DNA of 64,000 nt from assembly GCA_964036045.1 (NCBI GenBank), contig OZ038378.1:145266001-145330000 (forward strand), written 5' to 3'. The DNA is from Eutreptiella sp. 'Long Island Sound 2002'. Taxonomy: Eukaryota; Protista; Euglenida. Numbering within the stretch: position 1 is the stretch's first letter; every line of letters starts with the position of its first letter. Positions 2,281 to 64,000 of this stretch are shown piece after piece. Both the position numbers and the translations under genes were made by a program. A model generated the notes under the pieces. The model saw only the letters and a program-made list of their open reading frames with translations. It searched no databases and had not been told where the DNA came from.

Positions 2281-3451
2281 GAGCAATGATGTGGCAAAAG
2301 CAGCCATGAACGAAATTGGAGGGATCTTGTTCAGCCCAATCAACATGGCTGGCATGGCCAAACCAACTGGCTGCAAAGGTTAGGGTTAGGTTTATGGTGA
2401 TGCTATGGTTAGAGGGAGGGCAAGGGGAGGTAAGGGGAGCCTGTGCCCCCCCCCCCCCACCAACACCCCAAATCGCCCAACCTGGACCCCCCCCCCCAAC
2501 CGACCCTCCCAGAGCCCCCCCCCCCTCGCCCCTCCTAGACCCCCCCCCCCCCCCCCCCCAAGGGGCCTCCGGCCAACAGTTAGTTGGGGGGGTAGTTGGC
2601 GTCCAAAACCGAGGGGTCGCCCCCCCCGGGTTGTACAGTAGGCGACAGTGGTTGGTGGCCAACACACTGCATTGGGCGGTGGCCAGTGCGCCAGTGGCGA
2701 CAGTTGGTCAATGTGGGTTGGCGACAGTCAACAGCCATCACCAAAGTGCAGCAGTAATGCATGGCAAACGGACGACAGCTGATAGCGGTTGGCTTTACCT
2801 GCATGCGTTTTACCGGGAGCTCACTGCGGCCCGTTCACGGCCCGTGTCCATTGGATCATGATTCTCAAAGTGCCATGAAGCACGTGTCACATGCCATTCA
2901 ACATCTCCAATCGGATTGGCGGGCAATATGTTTGTGCTCATGATGAGCGATCAGCCGAGCCTTCCTCCACTGCATCCACTTGAAGCATACTATTGTTGTC
3001 CAATTTATATGCCACCTGGTGCGTCGCATTTCCCTTTGTTGCTGCACAAACGTAGGGGACACTGCACGGCACCACACCGCACCGCACCACACCCCGCCCC
3101 ACCGTATGCCCTCCAAGTCAAATGGTAGTCCTTCCGGCCCGCTCTCCCTCATACATATCCACTTGCACACCCTGAAAGACCGAGCACTACACTTTGGAAG
3201 GCCATCTCAGGGGCAACATGGCAATGGGGGGTAGGCGATCAAGGCAAAACAAGCAAAAGGAAACGTGCCGCCGACACTGGGCGTCGCAGAGCAAAGTTTC
3301 ATATGTACTGAGAATACACATGACAGCCAAGTGGTGCAAGAACCACCGAAAAAACACACATTTTGAAAGGGATGATGGATTTCCCTGTCCATGGCCGAGG
3401 GTGAGTAGCAAAACTGCGTCAGAGCCTTCAGGCGTTTGAGTTGGGCTTACC

Positions 3452-53900: not shown

Positions 53901-56543
53901 TTCTAAGAATAGATGGATAAAATATTGCATGTGACCTAACCACTATGTCAGCAGTGGCTCGGGATTAATAAACATGATATAGAACACAAAGCTCAAGTAC
54001 AATGAAGATGGAACATGGATAAAGGATTTATTGAAGGCATACCTACATATGATAAGCGATATCGGGACTTTTTGCACTTCGGGGTTAAAGTTGTGTATTT
54101 AAAAAGGTGCAAAAATATAGAAGATTGTGTTTTCGGACTAGAAAAAAATCTAAGGATGTGGAGCAGGGCCCATGCACTGCAGCAGCGAATAGGATGAAGG
54201 TGAAGGATTCAAGTTTTGAAAAAAAAAAGAAGTCTGCTTACAATAGATGTATCGGAAAAAGAATGGACGCAGAAGGATAGAAAAGGAGCCACATTGCATG
54301 AGTTTTGTAGTCCACAGATAAGAGTAGCCATCTAAAATTGAACAAAGGAATCACATTGAATGCACTTCATACATGGTAACATCCAATGTACATTTTTCCA
54401 AACCTCAACATATCTAACCTGATCTGTACGGATAGAGCACCTGTTATGGCACCATCATGGTCCTTTTTTTGGTTTTTTGGAAACTAAGATGCGGGCTTTG
54501 GCGGTCATACACGACGTCGTCTTTAACTTGATCGTGATTCCCGTTGCACAGACAATATAGGATGCAAGCGTAATTAGCTCACGCTAGTTACGGACATTCG
54601 TTGAATTCGAGTATTGCATAAGTTTGGACACGTGCACAAAAATGCAAATGAAGGATAGCTTTTGCCTCTACAGTGAATTAGAAACACTGTACTTTAATGG
54701 TCATGAGCATCCTTGATTTTTTTTGTACGTGATCCCATTCCAAAAAAGTTCTGGGGTCGGGTCCCACCCCACAATACTATACATGGAAAAGGTGAAAATA
54801 CAACGAAGAAGGTTGGGTTAGTCGTGCATCATGCATAGCGCTAGGGATGTAGGGACACTTGAGTCTACCCTTCGCCGGCTTTGGCTTTGTTTTTTGGGGG
54901 TATCAGAAGCAGATGCGGTAGTGGCCGAGCCCTACTGGTCGGTAGTGGTGGGTTAGGAGCTGTAAATAAATGCTATAAATAATCACAAGAAATCGCTGCT
55001 TCATTTGTGTTTTTCTTACAGCTTTTTGGTTGTGCACTTTTATTTCTGGCCGTCACCTTTTCAGCCTCAATGCATATTCTTTTCTGACGAGCTTGCCTTT
55101 GCGAACTTTGCCTCAGCTCTCAGTTCTTGATAGGGTGGTTAGGATCGGTTTTGGTAGCATTTTTTTCTTGGTGGTTGTGGTTAGTTTTGTTGTGGTCTTG
55201 GTTTTCTTTTTCTTGATTGTAACATTGAAAGTTTGGTTCCTCTTTTGTGCTTTTTTTTAAGTATCAGCCCTTAAAGTAGTGATTTGTTGCAGCTTTGCCC
55301 ATCAAATCTATTGTCAAAAATGGGTAGAATCTAAGAAGCATTATCTCAATCAAATAGAAGGTGCCCTACGGTGCAAAGAAAACATTGTACCCAACATCCT
55401 TGATGAAATGAAGTGTTATCTATGCTGTTCATTTGATTTTCTATGTTTTTGGCAGTTCCAACACGACGGTATGAGATCAAAAATTCTTGTACTATTGTTC
55501 ATCAAAACTCCTATTACTCCAGTGGACTATGGTGTGGGAACTAAGGGTTGTCTTTTTGAGAGATCCCAAGTTCAAACCCCACTCATCTAACTAAGTTAGA
55601 ACAACCCCATATGATGCATGTGACATGGTTGTGACCACATGTACCACAGCCTATGCTACCTCTTAAATTCCCGCTTTGCATCTCGTTCCTCTATTTGAAT
55701 AGTCTCTGTATTCTCTGGTTGCACTTGCTTTGGTGTTTGCTCCTGCTCCATTTTAGGTACTCAAAGATTTCAGTGGAAAATAAAACCAGACCAAGACTCC
55801 AAGACGAGCAGAACTGGGATCAATAAAATAATAAAGAACTTGATGGGGCTGTACAATGAACAGACAAACAATGGGTGATGTTGGGCCTTGTGTTTGCTCG
55901 TATGCATGCATGTATGCATCAGGACCACTCAGGACTTCAGTCTGCACTCTGCAACAGTGAACAGTGACTTCAGATCAGGGCAAAAATGGTATATCTCAGA
56001 AATCAGGCTTCTTGCAAAGATAGTCAAACAGACGAAACAAAAATGGTTTCCCAATGATAAAAAAACATAGAAAATCGCTTGAAATGTCTTCCAGGAATTT
56101 TCCGTAGCTCAGGAAACTGCAGAACTGAGTAGGAACTTCCCTCATGACCTCAGAACTCAGTAGGAATTCCCATAGTGGAAGCGGCGCACTCACGGGGCAA
56201 AAATGGTCAAAAAATGCAATAGTCGTATGACCACTATATAGATGCGGAATTTTATGCTGAGTCTGAAAATCATATTGTATTTCTGTGAAAGCACCATATG
56301 TTGGAGAATAATGCAGATTACTGAACAGCTCAGTCTCAATGAGACTAGCCAAAAAAATAGATAAAGCAAAGGCCAACACCCATGTTGTGCTATATTACAA
56401 ATAGTGTTCAAAGAAGAAACAATGGAATAACAAACAATAACTCATGGCATATAATACAATAGATAAACCCTCTTTTGAAATAAAGTTAAGCCATTAAGTG
56501 TCTTTCACCTATATTGGAAGTGATCAAGCTCCATGGACAACAT

Positions 56544-56991
56544 TTCCCCTAATGTCCCAACCAAACTCTAATAAAGAATAATACCATTGCTCCATATGAA
56601 ACCAATTTTGAGAAATTGTTGCTCATTCATGGACTTTTAACACTACCTCACGTGCCGGATCTGCCGGATTCTCATCATAGACTAAACTATCTTTTCAAAT
56701 GTCAATCATCTTGGTAAGCCAACCTTTGTTCATATCTATGTTTATTGTCACAATCCTTCGTGCATTGATCATATTTCATTGTGGTATCCCACTTAGCTTT
56801 TTAAGACGTCACAATTTTTTCGTGTGCTATTAAGTTGTGGTAATATCATACATCTCAGAATAAGTATAAAATTTGTCTACCCGATGGTGTTCCCCCAATG
56901 TCCCAACCGAACTCTAATAAAGAATAATACCATTGCTCCATATGGAACCAACATTTTGAGAAATTGTCGCTCATTCATGGACTTTTAACAC
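56544..56991 (+). repeat. ~100-bp direct repeat pair (56544-56643, 56890-56991) at the edge of an AT-rich island
   Basis: TTCCCC.AATGTCCCAACC.AACTCTAATAAAGAATAATACCATTGCTCCATATG...GGACTTTTAACAC twice. Confidence 0.9.
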
Positions 56992-58233
56992 CCCTTCCAG
57001 CCTGAATACACGCTGTGTGTGAAGGCGTCGTCCAAGAATGACTCCCATGTTCCACGTCACCAACAGATCTCACCTCAATCCGGCGTCAATGGGGTCCAAT
57101 CTTACTAAAAATTGGGAGTAGAACCAACCATAAATGACCAAATGTAGACCAAGATGAGTCCTTCAAACGGTCTCAGGATACTCCAGTGTCGTCCTCGTAC
57201 GCTCTCGTAGTCGTGAACGATGTTCCTGGTCGCAGTAGTAAGAAATCCAACTCTGATCCAGACGCTTGACCCAATACATGTCACCAAATCCAATCAATCT
57301 GGGCAGATGAACACAGTAATTGAGCCATAAAATCAGTGAAGTAGGCACCCTAGATATCAGGCCAGTACCTCAGCTGTCAGGTGGTCGTAGGTGTTGCTGG
57401 GGGCCTGCACTTGCCGCCATGAAACTCCAGCATATGAACTTGAGCTCCAGATCCCACATCATAAATGTACCAGGATGCCCCAATCCAGCCACATGAATCA
57501 GCATGTCATAACACAAATGCCAGGGCATGAGGACTCAGCTCCTCGCTGCACATGTACAACGGCGCGTCCAGACTTCTAACGCGTTGCTTTACGTGTTCGC
57601 CTCAACATTTAGACCACTGGTTCAAGTCAGGTAGGTGCCCTGGGAATAACTCCCTCCAAAACCCCAAAACTCAACTTGTAGTTACTTAAACTTGGCTTCA
57701 AGTTGACCATAGGTGCTGCGAAGTAAAACCAGGACCAAGTGATATTCAAAGTACTTTCCAACCATGAACTAACCAAAAGATTTTGGGAACCTCAAGAACC
57801 CCAGGTTCCTTGATACTAGGCTCCCACCAACTCAACTCCCTCCAGAATTTGTCGTAACTCCAGAACTTGCTGTTATGCCAGTCATATCCGCCTTTTAAAA
57901 CTGTTGAATATTTGACCTTGAAACTTCTTCCAACTCCTTTCTTTCTGGTTCCCAAAATTGTGCTGCTGACCTTGCTGGCGGCGCGAGTGGCTCACAGCGC
58001 AGAAGGCCGGCAGTCCCTCCGAAATTGCCACGAGGAATAATGGAGACCAAATAAGGTCTGAGCTTTTCCATGCCTTAAACTGTACTTTTCTGGATATATC
58101 CTGAACTTCAATGATTGTTCTGCAGTATGAAGTGAAGTTCTGCAGGTTTTCACCTTGGTCCGCCAGTGGAAGCATAAGAAGCATGAAAACAGACTTCAAG
58201 GTACTCTTTCCTCCTCAGTATCTTGGTAATCAC

Positions 58234-61200
58234 TCAAGGTAACCAGTCTTCTGCCATACCACCAACTGTAGGCTCTTCTGTACGTCGCCGTTTGCCTCCG
58301 TGCTGCTGTGAGCCCTTCTTGGTGCTGACCTCTCCTGGTTCCTTGTTGTCCGTGGCAGTCTCTTCCTTGGGTTCCTCCGCGCTGGACTTCTTCTTCAGTG
58401 TGCTGCTGATCCGCCGAGCCTGCCTTAGCGCTGTGTCAAAGCAAGGTGCGTGTGCCAGATAGTAATCCACAAAAACATGATTCAGCTTTCCATCATCATG
58501 CACGAATGCACGTACTGGTTCCCAAGTGCTCTCGCTCGTGCCATAGCCTTCCCACTTCGTTAAAAAGCGCCAGCCTTGTCTACATTGTCCTCTCAGGATC
58601 TGTTCGACGTGATAAGCTCCAGTTCTCTCCATCTCAGTCTGATTGTAGAATGGCGTATCCTGGTCATTTGCCACGATGTCCTGTTCATCAGCCAACGCTG
58701 CTCGCTTGTCGTCATTCAGCATGTCTGTCTCTTCTTCTTTGATCGTGTTTTCGCCATAGGCATCCACCAGCTCAAATGGGAAGCGCTTCACGAACTCAAA
58801 GGCAACAGGTACTTCGCCGCCCAAAGTAGGACTGCAACGCGCCGTAATACGGCCGCTGCTGACTCCAGTAACAAGGTAGGGACCATACAACATAACATCC
58901 TTCGTGGCACCCTTAGGTACCTCCAATTGCTTGAACCTCTTTCTCCTTCTATTGGCGCGTTCAAACCGACTCGCTCGTCCTTTCCTCAAGTGGGCTTGAA
59001 CAACTTGGGCAATCTTGTTTTGTTCTTTGACCCAGTCCTGCACTTGAACGTTGCCTTCGTGTAGAAAGGGTAGGTCCAAACGTAGAGTAGGCCTTCCATG
59101 GAAAACGTCTCCTCGTGAATAGCCAGATTTTCCTCTCTGCTTGTGGTTCATACATATGACCACCTGGTCGTTCAACTGGACCCAATTGCTGGGTTTAATA
59201 CTCTGCCTCAGAATACGGAGCTCTTCCTGGTACTCATCATTCATACGCTCGCATAGTCCGTTTGATTGTGGGCGGTAAGGTTGTGAGAACAATACTTCCA
59301 CGCCCGTTGCAGCAAATACGTTGCAATACCAGCCATAGTCTCCCTTGAAGCGAATATCCTTGTCACTGTGGATGCGAACAGGTGGGCCATAGAAACGAAT
59401 CCAATGGTGTTTGATGAGCTTCAGAACGCCTTCTCCATTAATAGTCTTCTTGCATGGTACAACTTGGCAGAAAGCACTCAGAGCGTCCACAATCATCAAG
59501 GCATAGTCGTAGTTATGACACTTGGGTCTGTCAATGAAGTCCACATACAACAGTGCATTGACCATGTGTGGCAGTGGCAGGACGCCAAGTAGGCCTCGGT
59601 CGCTGGGTTGGTTCCGCTTGCTCGTGACAAACTCCTTGCATGTCCTGTGCATGTCCTCAATTTTCTGTGTCAACTCTGTGTCAGGTACGCGAGTGTGGAA
59701 CATCTTCTCGAAAGCCCAGAGCCAGGAATCCGGTCCAGGATGAACGACAACATCGTGGGTCCACTGTAGGGCTGCGCCCAGCGCCTTCTTGGGTATGCAT
59801 GTTTGCACTTCCTTCCTTATAATACCACTTGAGGATAGCCACCACAGCTCCTTGTCCACCAGTGCATAGGATCCACCCCCTAGGGCTTTCAAACTATCTC
59901 CATACTCCTCCACATAGTTAGACTTCCGCAGAGAACTGAGTACTTCAGCTTTGCTCATCATGAGATCCAAATGGACATCCATTTTCTGAAAAGCTTCTTG
60001 AGAAAGAGCTTCAGAGCTTGCAGAAATTTTCTCATCGAAATTTTCACGTGAGAGGCAATCACATAGCTCATTTTTCAGACCCGGTACCCTGTAGATGTTG
60101 AGCTTCAGCTGAGCGAGAAACGTCCACCAACGTCTGAGCTTTCGGTTTTCAGGAGGGGCCCCCTTGAGAAACGTCTCCGTGGACTCCGGATCACATAACC
60201 ACACCGTGGAATTGCTGCCAAACAGTCGGCTTTGTCCGGAGATAAGCAGAATTCCAGAGAGTAATTCACGTTCATACGTGCTGTAGTTAGCTCTAGTTGA
60301 GGACCATTTCCAATTCCAGTGGCCAATGGGTACGAGATGGAATTCCTGCGAATCGTAGTTGTGCTTGAGTGAGCCGTCACGATTGACTCTGACTGTCCTC
60401 AGTTCATCCGCTATTCTCCTTGCAGCTGCTCCTGGAATTCGTTGCCACTGCAGAAGTGTGCCTCCGCCTCCCACAAGAGAAGCATCAGTGATGACCACGA
60501 ACTCGCCGTCAGGCGCAGGTGTGCCCAACAGCCTCAGTGAACTCAGCTTTTCCTTGATCTCCTGAAACTGAGCTTCATGCTCTGGTGTCCACTTCCAAGG
60601 TACAGTCTTCTTGGTCAAGTCCGTGAGAAGGTGGCTACTGTACGTGAAAAGTGGGGATGTGCCTCCTGTAAAAATTACAGGATCCCAGGGAAACTTCTGA
60701 TGTCCTTGACGCCACGGGTCTTGTCATCACGGATAGAAGCCTTCAAAATTGGGGCGACCTTTTCCTTCACAGGTCGCCACCATCTCCATCCAACTTGGAA
60801 ACCCAAATGTTCAATTTCCTCCTGCATGAATTCAGATTTTTCCAACTTCACGCGGGTATTGCATTCTTTACAAGTGCGTAAAAACTCCTCCACCAAACGT
60901 AAATGGTCATCAGCGTCATCGGTCCCCAATAGCACATCATCTATATAGACCTCAATGACTGCTCCCTTCTTCAGTAGTGCCTGCACCGTAGGTTTGAGCT
61001 TCATAAGGGCCACGACCTGGTTCATGAGCTCCTGGAAAGTTGCCGGGGCATTCGTCAACCCAAACGGCATAACTTTCCATTTGAACACTTGATCATTAGG
61101 AGCAATAAATGCTGATAGACCCTGCGCTCGTTTTGTTAACTCCACTTGCCAGAAACCACTGCGCTTATCCAATTTGGATTTGAAACGGCAATGAGCTGCT

Positions 61201-64000
61201 CTTTCCAGCGCCTGTTCCAAACACGGTAGACTCCCTGAATGTTTTTTCGTGAGTTTGTTCAACTTCCCGTAATGGACAACCAGTCTTTTTGCGTTGCTCC
61301 CTGATTTGTCTACCAAGAAGCATGGAGAGCAGTGTTTTGGATACTCTGCTTGCTCATATTTTTCCGGGAGGTCGGCTGCAATGCATTCAGTGATTTGACG
61401 CATTATCTCCTCACTGTCTGCCTTGCTAGCTGGAAATGGCTTTGAACGCACGGTGGTATTCTTGTGCCCATCCAGCAATTCCAAATCCATGGTAACCAAC
61501 TTCTCACATGAACCATGTGCCATCAACGGTCCAAAAGCAACCTTCCTTCGACGTAAGACTTCTTGAATTTCGGAAGGCAAAATTTTGATCTTCTCCTCGA
61601 AATCGTCTGCGGCTGCCAAATTTGATTTCCGATACTCATCCCTGGATACTGAGTAACACTCACTGAGTAGGGCCGAGACATCCAGATAAACGTCATTGCC
61701 ATCCACGATAAAGCGGTCGTCATCCAGATATTGGTAGAACAAATCTGTTTCATCTCCGTCAACACTCCTGCCCGTGAACTTGTTGTAATGGCTCTTCGAT
61801 CTGTCCTTGAGCTCTAGCATTTGTTGTTCCTCAGATATCTGGAAGATTGGGAGTTCAAAGAGCGTAAGTGGTCCTTCGAGACCGGCCATCCGCGTGGGTT
61901 GGCAATTCTTGCCTTGTCCTCCTCGACTTGCATGGTCACGCCATACTCATGCATAGCATGTAGGGCCAGACACGACATGGTCAAATTTTGTACACCTCCT
62001 AGAACTGAATCTTTGAGATCGACTTCGTTCAGTAAATCCTTGATTCGGTCCGAATAATCTTCGTGAATGCTTGGGAATGGGTCGTACTTCAGAGGCTGAG
62101 CGATATTGAGATCCGCCAGATAGCCGTCTTCACTGACTTCATCCCATTGCACTTCTGCAGGTTCTTCACTGACCTCTTCCCACTGAATGTCCACCTTGTC
62201 AACTTCAGCATCTCAAACGCCAGCATCCTGTTCTGCATCTGATTCCGTTGGAGGGTGAATTTCGGGGACTGCAGCCTCGTCCTTCGGTGTTGTTGCAGGT
62301 GTATCGTGCCCGTATCGCTTCAGTAAATCAGACCGGGTTAAACCATGGTTCACTCGATGGAGAAACTTGACCACTTGGGGATTCAGTTCATCCAACGAAA
62401 TATCACAATCATTGCCATCGATGAGGGATGCAATGCTTCCCCAGCGTGGCACTGGTAATGGGCTGGTCGCCCCATTTGGGAGATAGAGGGGTACATCTGG
62501 GATAGGTACACGAACCTTCGTCATGCGGTCCAAAAACGGTCGCCATGCGGCAGCTTCCCCGGTTTGGCCCCATTCAAGACAAATAACCACGACTTGCGCT
62601 CGGTCGAGCACGGCCTTGGTGACCATCTTCTCGAGGTGTGACCATGGTGGGTTGGCCCAGCATCACTGAAACCCTTGCCAATGTAGGCATAACATGAATT
62701 GAGGGGGGTGCAATACAACCGTTCGGTATGATTTTTGGGGTTGGCGTACAAGTCCACGGTGGGTCTCAAGTCTCAAGTCGATGAGGACTTGCTCCCTCAG
62801 TGAAAGTAACAAACTGTAGGCTTCTCTCCGGGAAATTCTCAAAGATGATTGAGCAGGTGGCAATCTGTTTCCTCCTTCCTTCCGACAGGACTTCTCAGAT
62901 AACGATACCAAGCATAATTCATCAGTCTCTGGATTCTTGACAATGAGCCTCGATGGAGTAAAAATCAAAGCAGAATTGTCTTGGCGTTTTGACGGATGAA
63001 ATTCATGCCCAGGCATACCTGAAAAGCTGAAGTCTCCATAACGATACAAACATGCGGAAGATTGAAATTGCCCATGCACACATCCACGGATTTCTCTCCT
63101 TCACTGTACGTGTAGTGCCCATCTCTCACCTTGACTGCACAGTAACCCCTGCGATTCCGATCTGACACCAATGATGAAGCCACAATGGAATCGGTTGCAC
63201 CAGTATCCAAAACAGCGTCACATATCCCCTCCTCCACAACCACAGGTAGTCACAACGTGAGGCCGTCCTTGACAGCGGCTTGAAGCAGGTCCACGATTGT
63301 CTCAACCTCTGAAAATGCCAGATCTCTCTTCCTGTTCTTGGCTTGACTCTCAGAGTTCTCCTGCATCGGTTTGGTCTCTGCTGAGGGGGCGCCAGCACCA
63401 GCACTTGCTGCTGAGGGGCCAGATGCATCTTTCTTTCTTGGGCCAGCTTTTGGTCCTTTTTGCGTCTTCCACCGTTTTTTGGGCTGCCTCCTCACTGAGA
63501 CCGGATTGGATCAGGAAGGTCTTGAGTCGATCCTCTTTCTGTTTTCTTTGGATCTGAAAGCAATGATCACTATAATGGTTCGTTTTGCCACAGTGTTTAC
63601 ACTGTATGCGGGCCTTGAATTCGGCGATCAACGCGTTGGGGTCCAACTGTCCTTTGCCTCCTCTGCCTCCTGGGCCTTTTCCTCTTCCCCGACCTTTTCC
63701 TTTATCAGAGCCTTTTCCTCCTTTGTCACCCTTGCCTTCTCTCTCAGAGACTCTTAGCTCTGCAATCATTGAGTGCCATTGGGAGAGGAGTTCGGAGATG
63801 TCCGCCTTGGGAGCTGAACTTCCAGACGATGGTCCTCCAGAGAAAGAGGTGCCCTTTTCCTTATCTTTCTGCCTTTCCTGGTATCGACTCGAAGCAGTGC
63901 GCCCGGATGCAGAACCACGAGAAGCGGCAAGATGTTTAAAGCCGACAGAAAGTTGTGCGCGCTCCTTCATGACATCCTTCAATGAACCATAAGAGTGCAT
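58234..64000 (-). mobile_element. Decayed Ty3/Gypsy (chromovirus-like) LTR retrotransposon: gag-PR-MTase-RT-RH-INT-chromodomain; 5' end outside window
   Basis: Zinc knuckle CKHCGKTNHYSDHC (63560-63601); AVLDTGA (~63199-63216); KLDKRSGFWQV, MPFGLTNAPATFQ, YIDD; RH TDAS...YERELL; INT D..D..E (YVDF, HSDK, NGLCERMN); chromodomain YHVEQIL...FLTKWEGYGTSESTWEP; several frameshifts and stops. Confidence 0.95.
62415..62790 (-). pseudogene. Dam-like DNA amino-methyltransferase (N6-adenine type) domain within Gypsy pol, disrupted
   Basis: Reconstructed LRPTVDLYANPKNH...YCTPLNSCYAY, frameshift, (N)WQGFQ*CWANPPWSHLEKMVTKAVLDRAQVVVICLEWG...W...PRWGSIASLIDG; WANPPW at 62642-62659. Confidence 0.8.

Follow-up and report, generated by a model that had tools for sequence, protein, structure and literature searches.

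Can the polyprotein of a Ty3/Gypsy long terminal repeat (LTR) retrotransposon house a DNA methyltransferase and, if so, what might the element do with it? The question is raised by one end of a 64,000-nucleotide (nt) stretch of the genome of Eutreptiella sp. 'Long Island Sound 2002' (contig OZ038378.1, positions 145,266,001 to 145,330,000; hereafter the window, with positions counted from its first letter), in which a prediction made from the letters alone placed a Dam-like methyltransferase between the protease (PR) and the reverse transcriptase (RT) of a Ty3/Gypsy element. Window positions 55654-64000 on the minus strand hold a frame-broken copy, cut short at its 5' end, of a chromovirus-like Ty3/Gypsy LTR retrotransposon that is very abundant in the genome. 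Its pol comprises, in this order, PR, a domain with a methyltransferase fold, an acidic linker, RT, RNase H (RH), integrase (INT) and a chromodomain. The domain is assigned securely to the 'DAM' family of retrotransposons, which was initially recognised in DIRS elements, and it is under purifying selection within the family of copies to which the window copy belongs. Dam domains in non-DIRS LTR retrotransposons have been named DAM-LTRs (Fernandez-Moreno et al., bioRxiv 10.64898/2026.05.21.726589, May 2026; hereafter the 2026 preprint). Here, the evidence for the domain and for its inheritance with the element is presented, and the roles that it could play are weighed.

The domain in the window copy

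In the window copy, the domain lies across three frames. Three-frame translation of 62200-62965 (minus strand) gives PTVDLYANPKNHTERLYCTPLNSCYAY in one frame and, past a TGA, CWANPPWSHLEKMVTKAVLDRAQVVVICLEWGQ... in another; a longer reading of the same peptide runs PTVDLYANPKNH...YC...CYAY and then, after the TGA, CWANPPWSHLEKMV...VVVICLEWGQ in the other frame. The peptide that had been joined across a frameshift and a TGA, with its VDLYA and NPPW motifs, is thus present in the translation, and Pfam matches both of its flanks, the DTGA-containing PR and the YIDD-containing RT, in the order that had been proposed. A profile built from 32 relatives (A3, described below) matches the window in three pieces in three frames, namely 62216-62662 (E 9e-35, profile positions 67-169), 62524-62772 (E 1e-9, positions 28-61) and 62666-63100 (E 0.9, positions 2-26). 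The whole domain is therefore placed at 62345-62836; the span first proposed, 62415-62790, does hold the domain and is slightly too narrow for all of it. The signal of the domain in the window exceeds chance by far. Pfam applied to the broken window pieces returned no relevant domain match in the methyltransferase stretch, and an intact natural copy was needed for the Dam signal to appear.

Lesions were defined by alignment to such a copy, L004, which has an open frame and in which the intact domain occupies L004:1312-1812. The single frameshift and the single TGA of the original prediction were both found, and two further small gaps have to be added to them (Table 1). The window copy itself is unable to make the protein. 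Short contigs from four independent public sequencing runs break at 62772/62777 and at 62971/62972, and their depth dips over 62665-62715, which fits lesions private to the window copy; it should be noted that these contigs are unitigs of 39-255 nt at very high depth, which show the abundance of the family but give neither a base-by-base proof of the lesions nor a sign of expression.

Sequence relatives and predicted fold

Against the Pfam Dam family (PF05869), the intact domain scored E 0.0016-0.0026 (17.9-18.5 bits; curated cut-off 28.1). When 1.84 billion representative proteins were searched with a profile, 525 relatives were returned at E<=1e-3, and a protease signal was detected in nine of the 10 longest of these and lay upstream of the domain in eight of the 10. 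The A3 alignment, which comprises 32 diverse full-length relatives at 25-65% identity, includes 27 members that match Pfam Dam (best E 1.3e-9). Its conserved positions include Y8, F32-A33 (VDLFAS), W55, N64-P65 (NPPF/W), K76, P89 and W91, with F32-A33 (motif I) and N64 and P65 (motif IV) conserved in at least 90% of the 32 relatives. With Asn in first place, motif IV suggests that the methylated base is adenine and not cytosine (at N4). In four rows of A3 (P0133, P0144, P0148 and P0158), the Asn-Pro-Pro triplet is lost (NPRF, KPRL) with the rest of the domain kept; P0133 derives from an 845-kb contig of the ENA, and this subgroup bears on whether catalysis is always needed. Searches of the sequences in the PDB, by phmmer and by profile, yielded no meaningful match.

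Modeling with AlphaFold2 depended on the depth of the alignment. A shallow alignment of nine copies from the same genome gave an unusable model with a predicted local distance difference test score (pLDDT) of 43.6, which was superseded by the model obtained with the 32-sequence alignment (pLDDT 93.8; predicted template modeling (TM) score, pTM, 0.89). The fold of the domain is, according to this model, that of a class I (Rossmann-like) methyltransferase of the adenine-N6 kind; together with the Dam profile signal in the family and in its relatives, this bears out the Dam-like methyltransferase that had been proposed. Among clusters of the ESM Atlas, the model matched eukaryotic RT-RNaseH-Dam (DIRS-like) proteins with TM scores of 0.74-0.77 and a root-mean-square deviation (rmsd) of ~2 Å over ~140 residues, and a phage PF05869 cluster with TM scores of 0.70/0.78. 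The top matches in BFVD were phage N6-adenine methyltransferases (E 6e-8, TMq 0.63-0.69), and giant-virus PCIF1-like proteins gave TMq values of 0.56-0.59. The best match in the PDB was PCIF1/CAPAM (Foldseek E 3.6e-5; VIA Z 10.0, rmsd 3.2 Å over 136 residues), and METTL5, KsgA/DIMT1, Erm, M.TaqI, M.BseCI, T4 Dam and EcoDam had Z scores of 6.6-7.7; no PF05869 enzyme was present among the PDB matches. The models thus suggest a ranking in which the DAM domains of DIRS elements are closest, followed by phage PF05869 Dam and then by PCIF1, and the DAM family is related to the small phage Dam enzymes (PF05869) and more distantly to PCIF1. This ranking bears on the disagreement between an origin of the domain from Dam (Fernandez-Moreno et al., 2026) and an origin from PCIF1 (Iyer et al., 2016).

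Family copies and selection

With the C-terminal piece of the domain as query, the 2.28-Gb genome of the organism yielded 23,217 first-look candidates. All 151 of the matches that were scored had E values below 1e-52, at 79-92% identity, and many lie within open frames of 400-1,000 residues; in L004, a single open frame of 599 residues comprises PR, domain and linker. The domain was present in each of the 36 unique copies examined, 13 of which have an uninterrupted 167-codon core, and in intact copies it is in frame with PR, so that the family-wide presence anticipated in the original prediction is confirmed. NPPW is the majority motif among the 36 copies. Variants such as HPPW, NPQW, SPPW and DPPW are mostly singletons, as expected from decay after insertion. 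A search for homologous proteins returned only copies from the same assembly.

Selection was assessed by comparisons made between natural copies. Among indel-free copies, pairwise dN/dS (Nei-Gojobori) was 0.37 for the domain, 0.30 for PR and 0.42-0.45 for the linkers, in comparison to ~1.1 for a frame-shifted (frame+1) control, which is the outcome expected of purifying selection in the dN/dS check that had been suggested for this domain. When two subfamilies were compared, pN for the domain was 0.25 and pS was 0.80 (saturated). Selection has therefore maintained the domain during the multiplication of the family.

An inherited arrangement

On the minus strand of the window, Pfam domains occur in the order PR, RVT_1, RNase H, rve and Chromo, which is that of Ty3/Gypsy chromoviruses. 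The Chromo match in the 794-residue open reading frame (ORF) has a score of 21.9 bits, in comparison to a curated cut-off of 25.1, and its motif Y.VE.I...W..LTKWEGY...TWEP aligns with the chromodomain of L041, a metagenome contig of 7.9 kb. A tyrosine recombinase did not turn up in the Pfam scan of the window element, which has an rve integrase instead; the assignment to Ty3/Gypsy that had been made from the letters alone thus holds. Gag, PR-DAM and RT-RH-INT-chromo proteins are all encoded in L041, which is colinear with the window element, with identities of 36% for PR-DAM, 49% for RT and 38% for RH-INT-chromo (over 766 residues, chromodomain included). This shows that the whole PR-DAM-RT-RH-INT-chromo arrangement was inherited from an ancestor common to the window family and the environmental element. 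Since the same colinear pol is found in an environmental contig, the window element belongs to an established lineage rather than harboring a nested DIRS fragment.

Possible functions of the domain

The reading put forward here, tentatively and with a rough probability of 0.45, is that intact copies of the domain act as a self-marking enzyme. Contained in Gag-Pol, it would enter the particle together with RT and would use S-adenosylmethionine (SAM) to methylate adenine at N6 on the replication intermediates of the element, either the RNA:DNA hybrid or the cDNA. Newly inserted copies would thereby bear, or draw to themselves, the N6-methyladenine (6mA) mark that in such protists goes with permissive chromatin. 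The 2026 preprint puts forward this model of packaging followed by self-methylation; its text proposes methylation of RNA:DNA intermediates and reports that a higher share of DAM-LTR insertions in Euglena gracilis is 6mA-methylated (10.64898/2026.05.21.726589). If the domain is active, such elements would write 6mA on themselves, and a parasite would be choosing its own chromatin state, an idea already contained in that preprint. Several observations weigh against an active self-marking enzyme. The family's own Pfam Dam score (~18 bits) is under the curated cut-off, and the glycine-rich SAM loop that is usual in motif I is missing from this region (VDLYA/VDLFAS). Motif IV is altered in some relatives (NPRF and KPRL in A3, NAPF in another abundant family of the same genome), which would be surprising if the catalytic centre were indispensable. 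Further, a search of sequencing runs found no RNA run holding the stretch, and LTR expression in E. gracilis is described in the preprint as low or undetectable. Additionally, DIRS and DAM-LTR domains expressed in dam-deficient Escherichia coli caused no rise in 6mA (Fernandez-Moreno et al., 2026), and the methyltransferase domain of DIRS1 was placed in the PCIF1 clade and considered likely inactive (Iyer, Zhang and Aravind, 2016; PMC4738411).

Some of these observations would also be accommodated by a catalytically dead methyltransferase fold that is kept for another role, such as binding of the element's RNA or cDNA, or mimicry of PCIF1 that docks the polyprotein on the transcription machinery. 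A docking role of this kind was proposed for DIRS1 (Iyer et al., 2016). A dead fold is also favored by the negative heterologous 6mA assay in E. coli (Fernandez-Moreno et al., 2026), by the motif I without a glycine-rich loop and by the variation of motif IV, which reads NAPF in the L053-type family and NPRF or KPRL in A3 although the open frames of these relatives are still long. Purifying selection, moreover, is equally compatible with a binding role. Conservation of N64, P65 and F32-A33 in at least 90% of the 32 relatives, down to 25% identity, counts against loss of catalysis. So does the behavior of Erm/KsgA-type adenine methyltransferases, among which N-x-P-aromatic variants are active. 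The 6mA enrichment on DAM-LTR copies (Fernandez-Moreno et al., 2026) points in the same direction, and a dead fold is considered rather unlikely. Another alternative is an RNA-directed enzyme like PCIF1/CAPAM, which would methylate a cap-adjacent or internal adenosine of the element's genomic RNA and not DNA. Two aligners independently rank PCIF1 first in the PDB (Foldseek E 3.6e-5; VIA Z 10.0, in comparison to <=8.5 for all others), the matches that come after it there are for the most part RNA adenine methyltransferases (METTL5, KsgA/DIMT1, Erm), one relative has a weak Pfam PCIF1_WW match, and the DIRS1 domain falls in the PCIF1 clade of Iyer et al. (2016). However, models of phage PF05869 proteins fit better (BFVD TMq 0.63-0.69 in comparison to 0.56-0.59; ESM Atlas TM 0.70/0.78 for phage Dam), the first rank of PCIF1 in the PDB is explicable by the lack of a PF05869 structure among the matches there, and the element has neither the WW domain nor the helical cap-binding domain of PCIF1. 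An RNA-directed enzyme is considered very unlikely. A broader version, in which an active adenosine-N6 methyltransferase would take as its substrate the element's own RNA (as PCIF1 does) or the RNA:DNA hybrid in the particle and not duplex DNA, is distinctly unlikely. If true, it would reconcile the negative E. coli assays with a catalytic motif under selection, and the enzyme would be a retrotransposon-encoded writer that acts before integration.

It could also be argued that the domain is foreign to the Gypsy element altogether and that the motif stems from an isolated, nested DIRS fragment, from a chimeric assembly or from chance. The breakage of the window copy into three frames would fit such an origin, and the 2026 preprint cautions that Euglena data are prone to nested insertions and chimeras. 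This explanation was rejected as vanishingly improbable: the domain shares one open frame with PR in many copies and was found in 36/36 of those examined, it is colinear with PR and RT in the unrelated environmental contig L041, the A3 profile matches a window piece at E 9e-35, and the element has rve and no tyrosine recombinase that the Pfam scan turned up.

Element features and ends

The features of the window element, including the lesions of the copy, are compiled in Table 1.

Table 1. Features of the retrotransposon copy at window positions 55654-64000, in the order in which the minus strand is read, followed by the lesions of the copy.
Feature	Position	Strand	Evidence
Partial gag with CCHC zinc knuckle CKHCGKTNHYSDHC at 63601-63560	63350-64000, continues past window end	(-)	ORF listing, translation
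Retropepsin-type aspartic protease (PR), DTGA at 63207-63196	62965-63243	(-)	Pfam gag-asp_proteas 6.5e-5, RVP_2, RVP
Predicted Dam/DIRS-type N6-adenine methyltransferase-fold domain, 167 residues in intact copies	62345-62836	(-)	Profile matches, alignment to L004
VDLYA (motif I-like)	62757-62743	(-)	Translation
NPPW (motif IV)	62653-62642	(-)	Translation
Acidic low-complexity linker between domain and RT	61890-62344	(-)	Translations; pairwise dN/dS 0.42 among copies
Reverse transcriptase ORF, YIDD at 60947-60936	60675-61889	(-)	Pfam RVT_1 4.7e-28; 49% identity to L041 RT
794-residue ORF: RNase H, integrase (rve) and C-terminal chromodomain	58234-60618	(-)	Pfam RT_RNaseH_2 4e-14, rve 6e-6, Chromo 1.6e-4
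Polypurine-rich tract GGCTGGAAGGGG, directly upstream of 3' LTR	56991-57002	(-)	Read from sequence; putative function
3' LTR, start TGTTAAAAG, end GGTAGCA, 1337 nt	55654-56990	(-)	Same block is the 5' LTR in L031, L032 and L033
1-nt gap (frameshift), PR to domain	near 62972	(-)	Alignment to L004
2-nt gap	near 62775	(-)	Alignment to L004
1-nt gap (frameshift) relative to intact copies	between 62683 and 62682	(-)	Alignment to L004
In-frame TGA, four codons ahead of NPPW	62665-62663	(-)	Alignment to L004

The LTR was defined from other copies and not from a pair at the window locus. A block of ~1.0 kb lies downstream of pol in the window (55654-56642) and has a length of ~1.0 kb in other copies as well; in L031, L032 and L033, the family runs on for ~1,100 nt past the gag-side junction and then enters the same ~1.0-kb block. 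The occurrence of this block on both sides of the element, its TG..CA ends and the adjacent purine tract therefore identify it as an LTR with a polypurine tract; the primer binding site is a candidate only. The first ~100 nt of the 3' LTR are present twice, at 56890-56991 and at 56544-56643, 348 nt apart and 94% identical, and it is because of this doubling that the window 3' LTR reaches 1337 nt. The LTR thus restarts inside itself, through a partial tandem duplication or a small insertion that carries the LTR start. On the opposite side, homology to six other copies ends sharply at the equivalent of position 64362, 362 nt beyond the window end, where a different element is found. Self-BLAST of window coordinates 50001-73000 revealed no LTR pair, because the 5' part of the window copy has been cut off by that other element; the copy lacks a 5' LTR of its own.

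Other elements of the genome and the host

The element that abuts the truncated 5' side belongs to a second, different DAM-LTR family and lies in the opposite orientation (L038:362-9000, equivalent to 64362-73000, plus strand). It has a PR at L038:3333-3917, followed by a Dam-like domain (VELFAS...ANPPFS) with one internal stop that runs into a 1409-residue RT-RNaseH-integrase frame (L038:3921-8147), and the block is 97% identical to an inverted copy ~200 kb away (C1:145519531-145528183). A Dam-like domain is also found upstream of RT in another abundant family of the same genome (L053:1-3192, minus strand; L054, L059, L061 and L062). In this family, the Pfam Dam score is 42-45 bits, above the cut-off, and motif IV is NAPF and not NPPF/W; some copies have open frames of up to 1,774 residues. 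In the same genome, copies with open frames of 1,700 residues lie at C8:59.95 Mb and C4:168.6 Mb.

A 24-mer that is taken here to be the Euglena spliced leader matches the genome exactly at 3,309 places dispersed over both strands, in comparison to 0 for the reversed control, and in places its copies are ~40 nt apart (C1:62485367 and C1:62485409). This supports a Euglena-like, euglenid genome, as had been presumed when the element was first described as belonging to a euglenid lineage. Environmental runs from estuaries (X6, X10 and X11) hold near-identical pieces of the window family, amounting to up to 0.29 of the sampled words when compared with 58234-64000, and contigs from these runs reach 255 nt at >=97% identity. 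The host or a close relative is probably present in the estuary samples.

Comparison with known systems

Capture of a DNA-methylation enzyme by an LTR or DIRS element, as seen here, has a precedent in the cytosine-5 methyltransferase retrotransposons (de Mendoza et al., 2018; PMC5890265). In contrast to the window family, those elements carry a C5-cytosine DNA methyltransferase (DNMT), and their hosts are dinoflagellates and charophytes. Among solved structures, the closest to the domain is PCIF1/CAPAM (PDB 6irv-6is0), an mRNA cap-specific adenosine-N6 methyltransferase that shares 16% identity with it and has an NPPF motif. However, Pfam detects no WW domain in the PR-DAM open frame, the helical cap-binding domain and the insertions of PCIF1 are missing, and only the methyltransferase core aligns, over PCIF1 residues 236-653. 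With phage Dam enzymes of PF05869, the domain shares an NPP-aromatic motif IV and, as modeled, a compact class I fold (130-250 residues; BFVD rmsd 2.3-4 Å over ~150 columns). Sequence identity to phage Dam is only 14-18%, and the domain differs from these enzymes in scoring under the Pfam cut-off and in being embedded in a retroelement polyprotein. DIRS1/PAT-type elements hold the same domain family with its DLFA..N and NPPF/W motifs. In DIRS elements, the domain follows RT-RNase H and is accompanied by a tyrosine recombinase and by split or inverted repeats, whereas in the window element it stands after PR and before RT, in the company of a DDE integrase, a chromodomain and ordinary LTRs.

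The window family is most similar to the DAM-LTRs, with which it shares Ty3/Gypsy-like character, RVT_1, rve, a chromodomain (in a subset of DAM-LTRs), a Dam-family domain with Asn-Pro-Pro-aromatic, very high copy number and a host that is Euglena or, for the window family, Euglena-like; a DAM domain is found alongside RVT_1 and a retroviral-type integrase, and no tyrosine recombinase was seen. According to the available text of the 2026 preprint (10.64898/2026.05.21.726589), the DAM-LTRs include an E. gracilis group with chromodomain-bearing members, and repeated capture of the domain from DIRS elements is proposed. The preprint's 'EpiLTRs', LTR elements that bear a DNMT, differ from the window family, which has none: no ORF of >=130 residues is present between the pol stop and the LTR end of the window element, and an EpiLTR identity was rejected for lack of a DNMT module. 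The screen described in the preprint used hmmsearch at E<=1e-5, in comparison to which the window family reaches ~18 bits (E ~2e-3) on PF05869. It may be that the family was caught only in part by that screen and, with the family under the stated detection threshold, the census of DAM-LTRs in Euglena may be an underestimate. The original prediction, a Gypsy lineage with an amino-methyltransferase in an unusual position, holds in that the domain does lie in pol; its novelty was pre-empted by the preprint of May 2026. DAM-LTR elements, those of Euglena included, are already described there, and the window is a confirming example. The available text of the preprint makes no mention of the protease, of PCIF1 or of the exact position of the domain in Euglena. 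To this description, the window family adds a PR-DAM-RT-RH-INT-chromo order that is inherited as a block, with its conserved PR-DAM junction, direct evidence that, within the family, the domain is under purifying selection, and a structural ranking, based on predicted models, that informs the origin of the domain.

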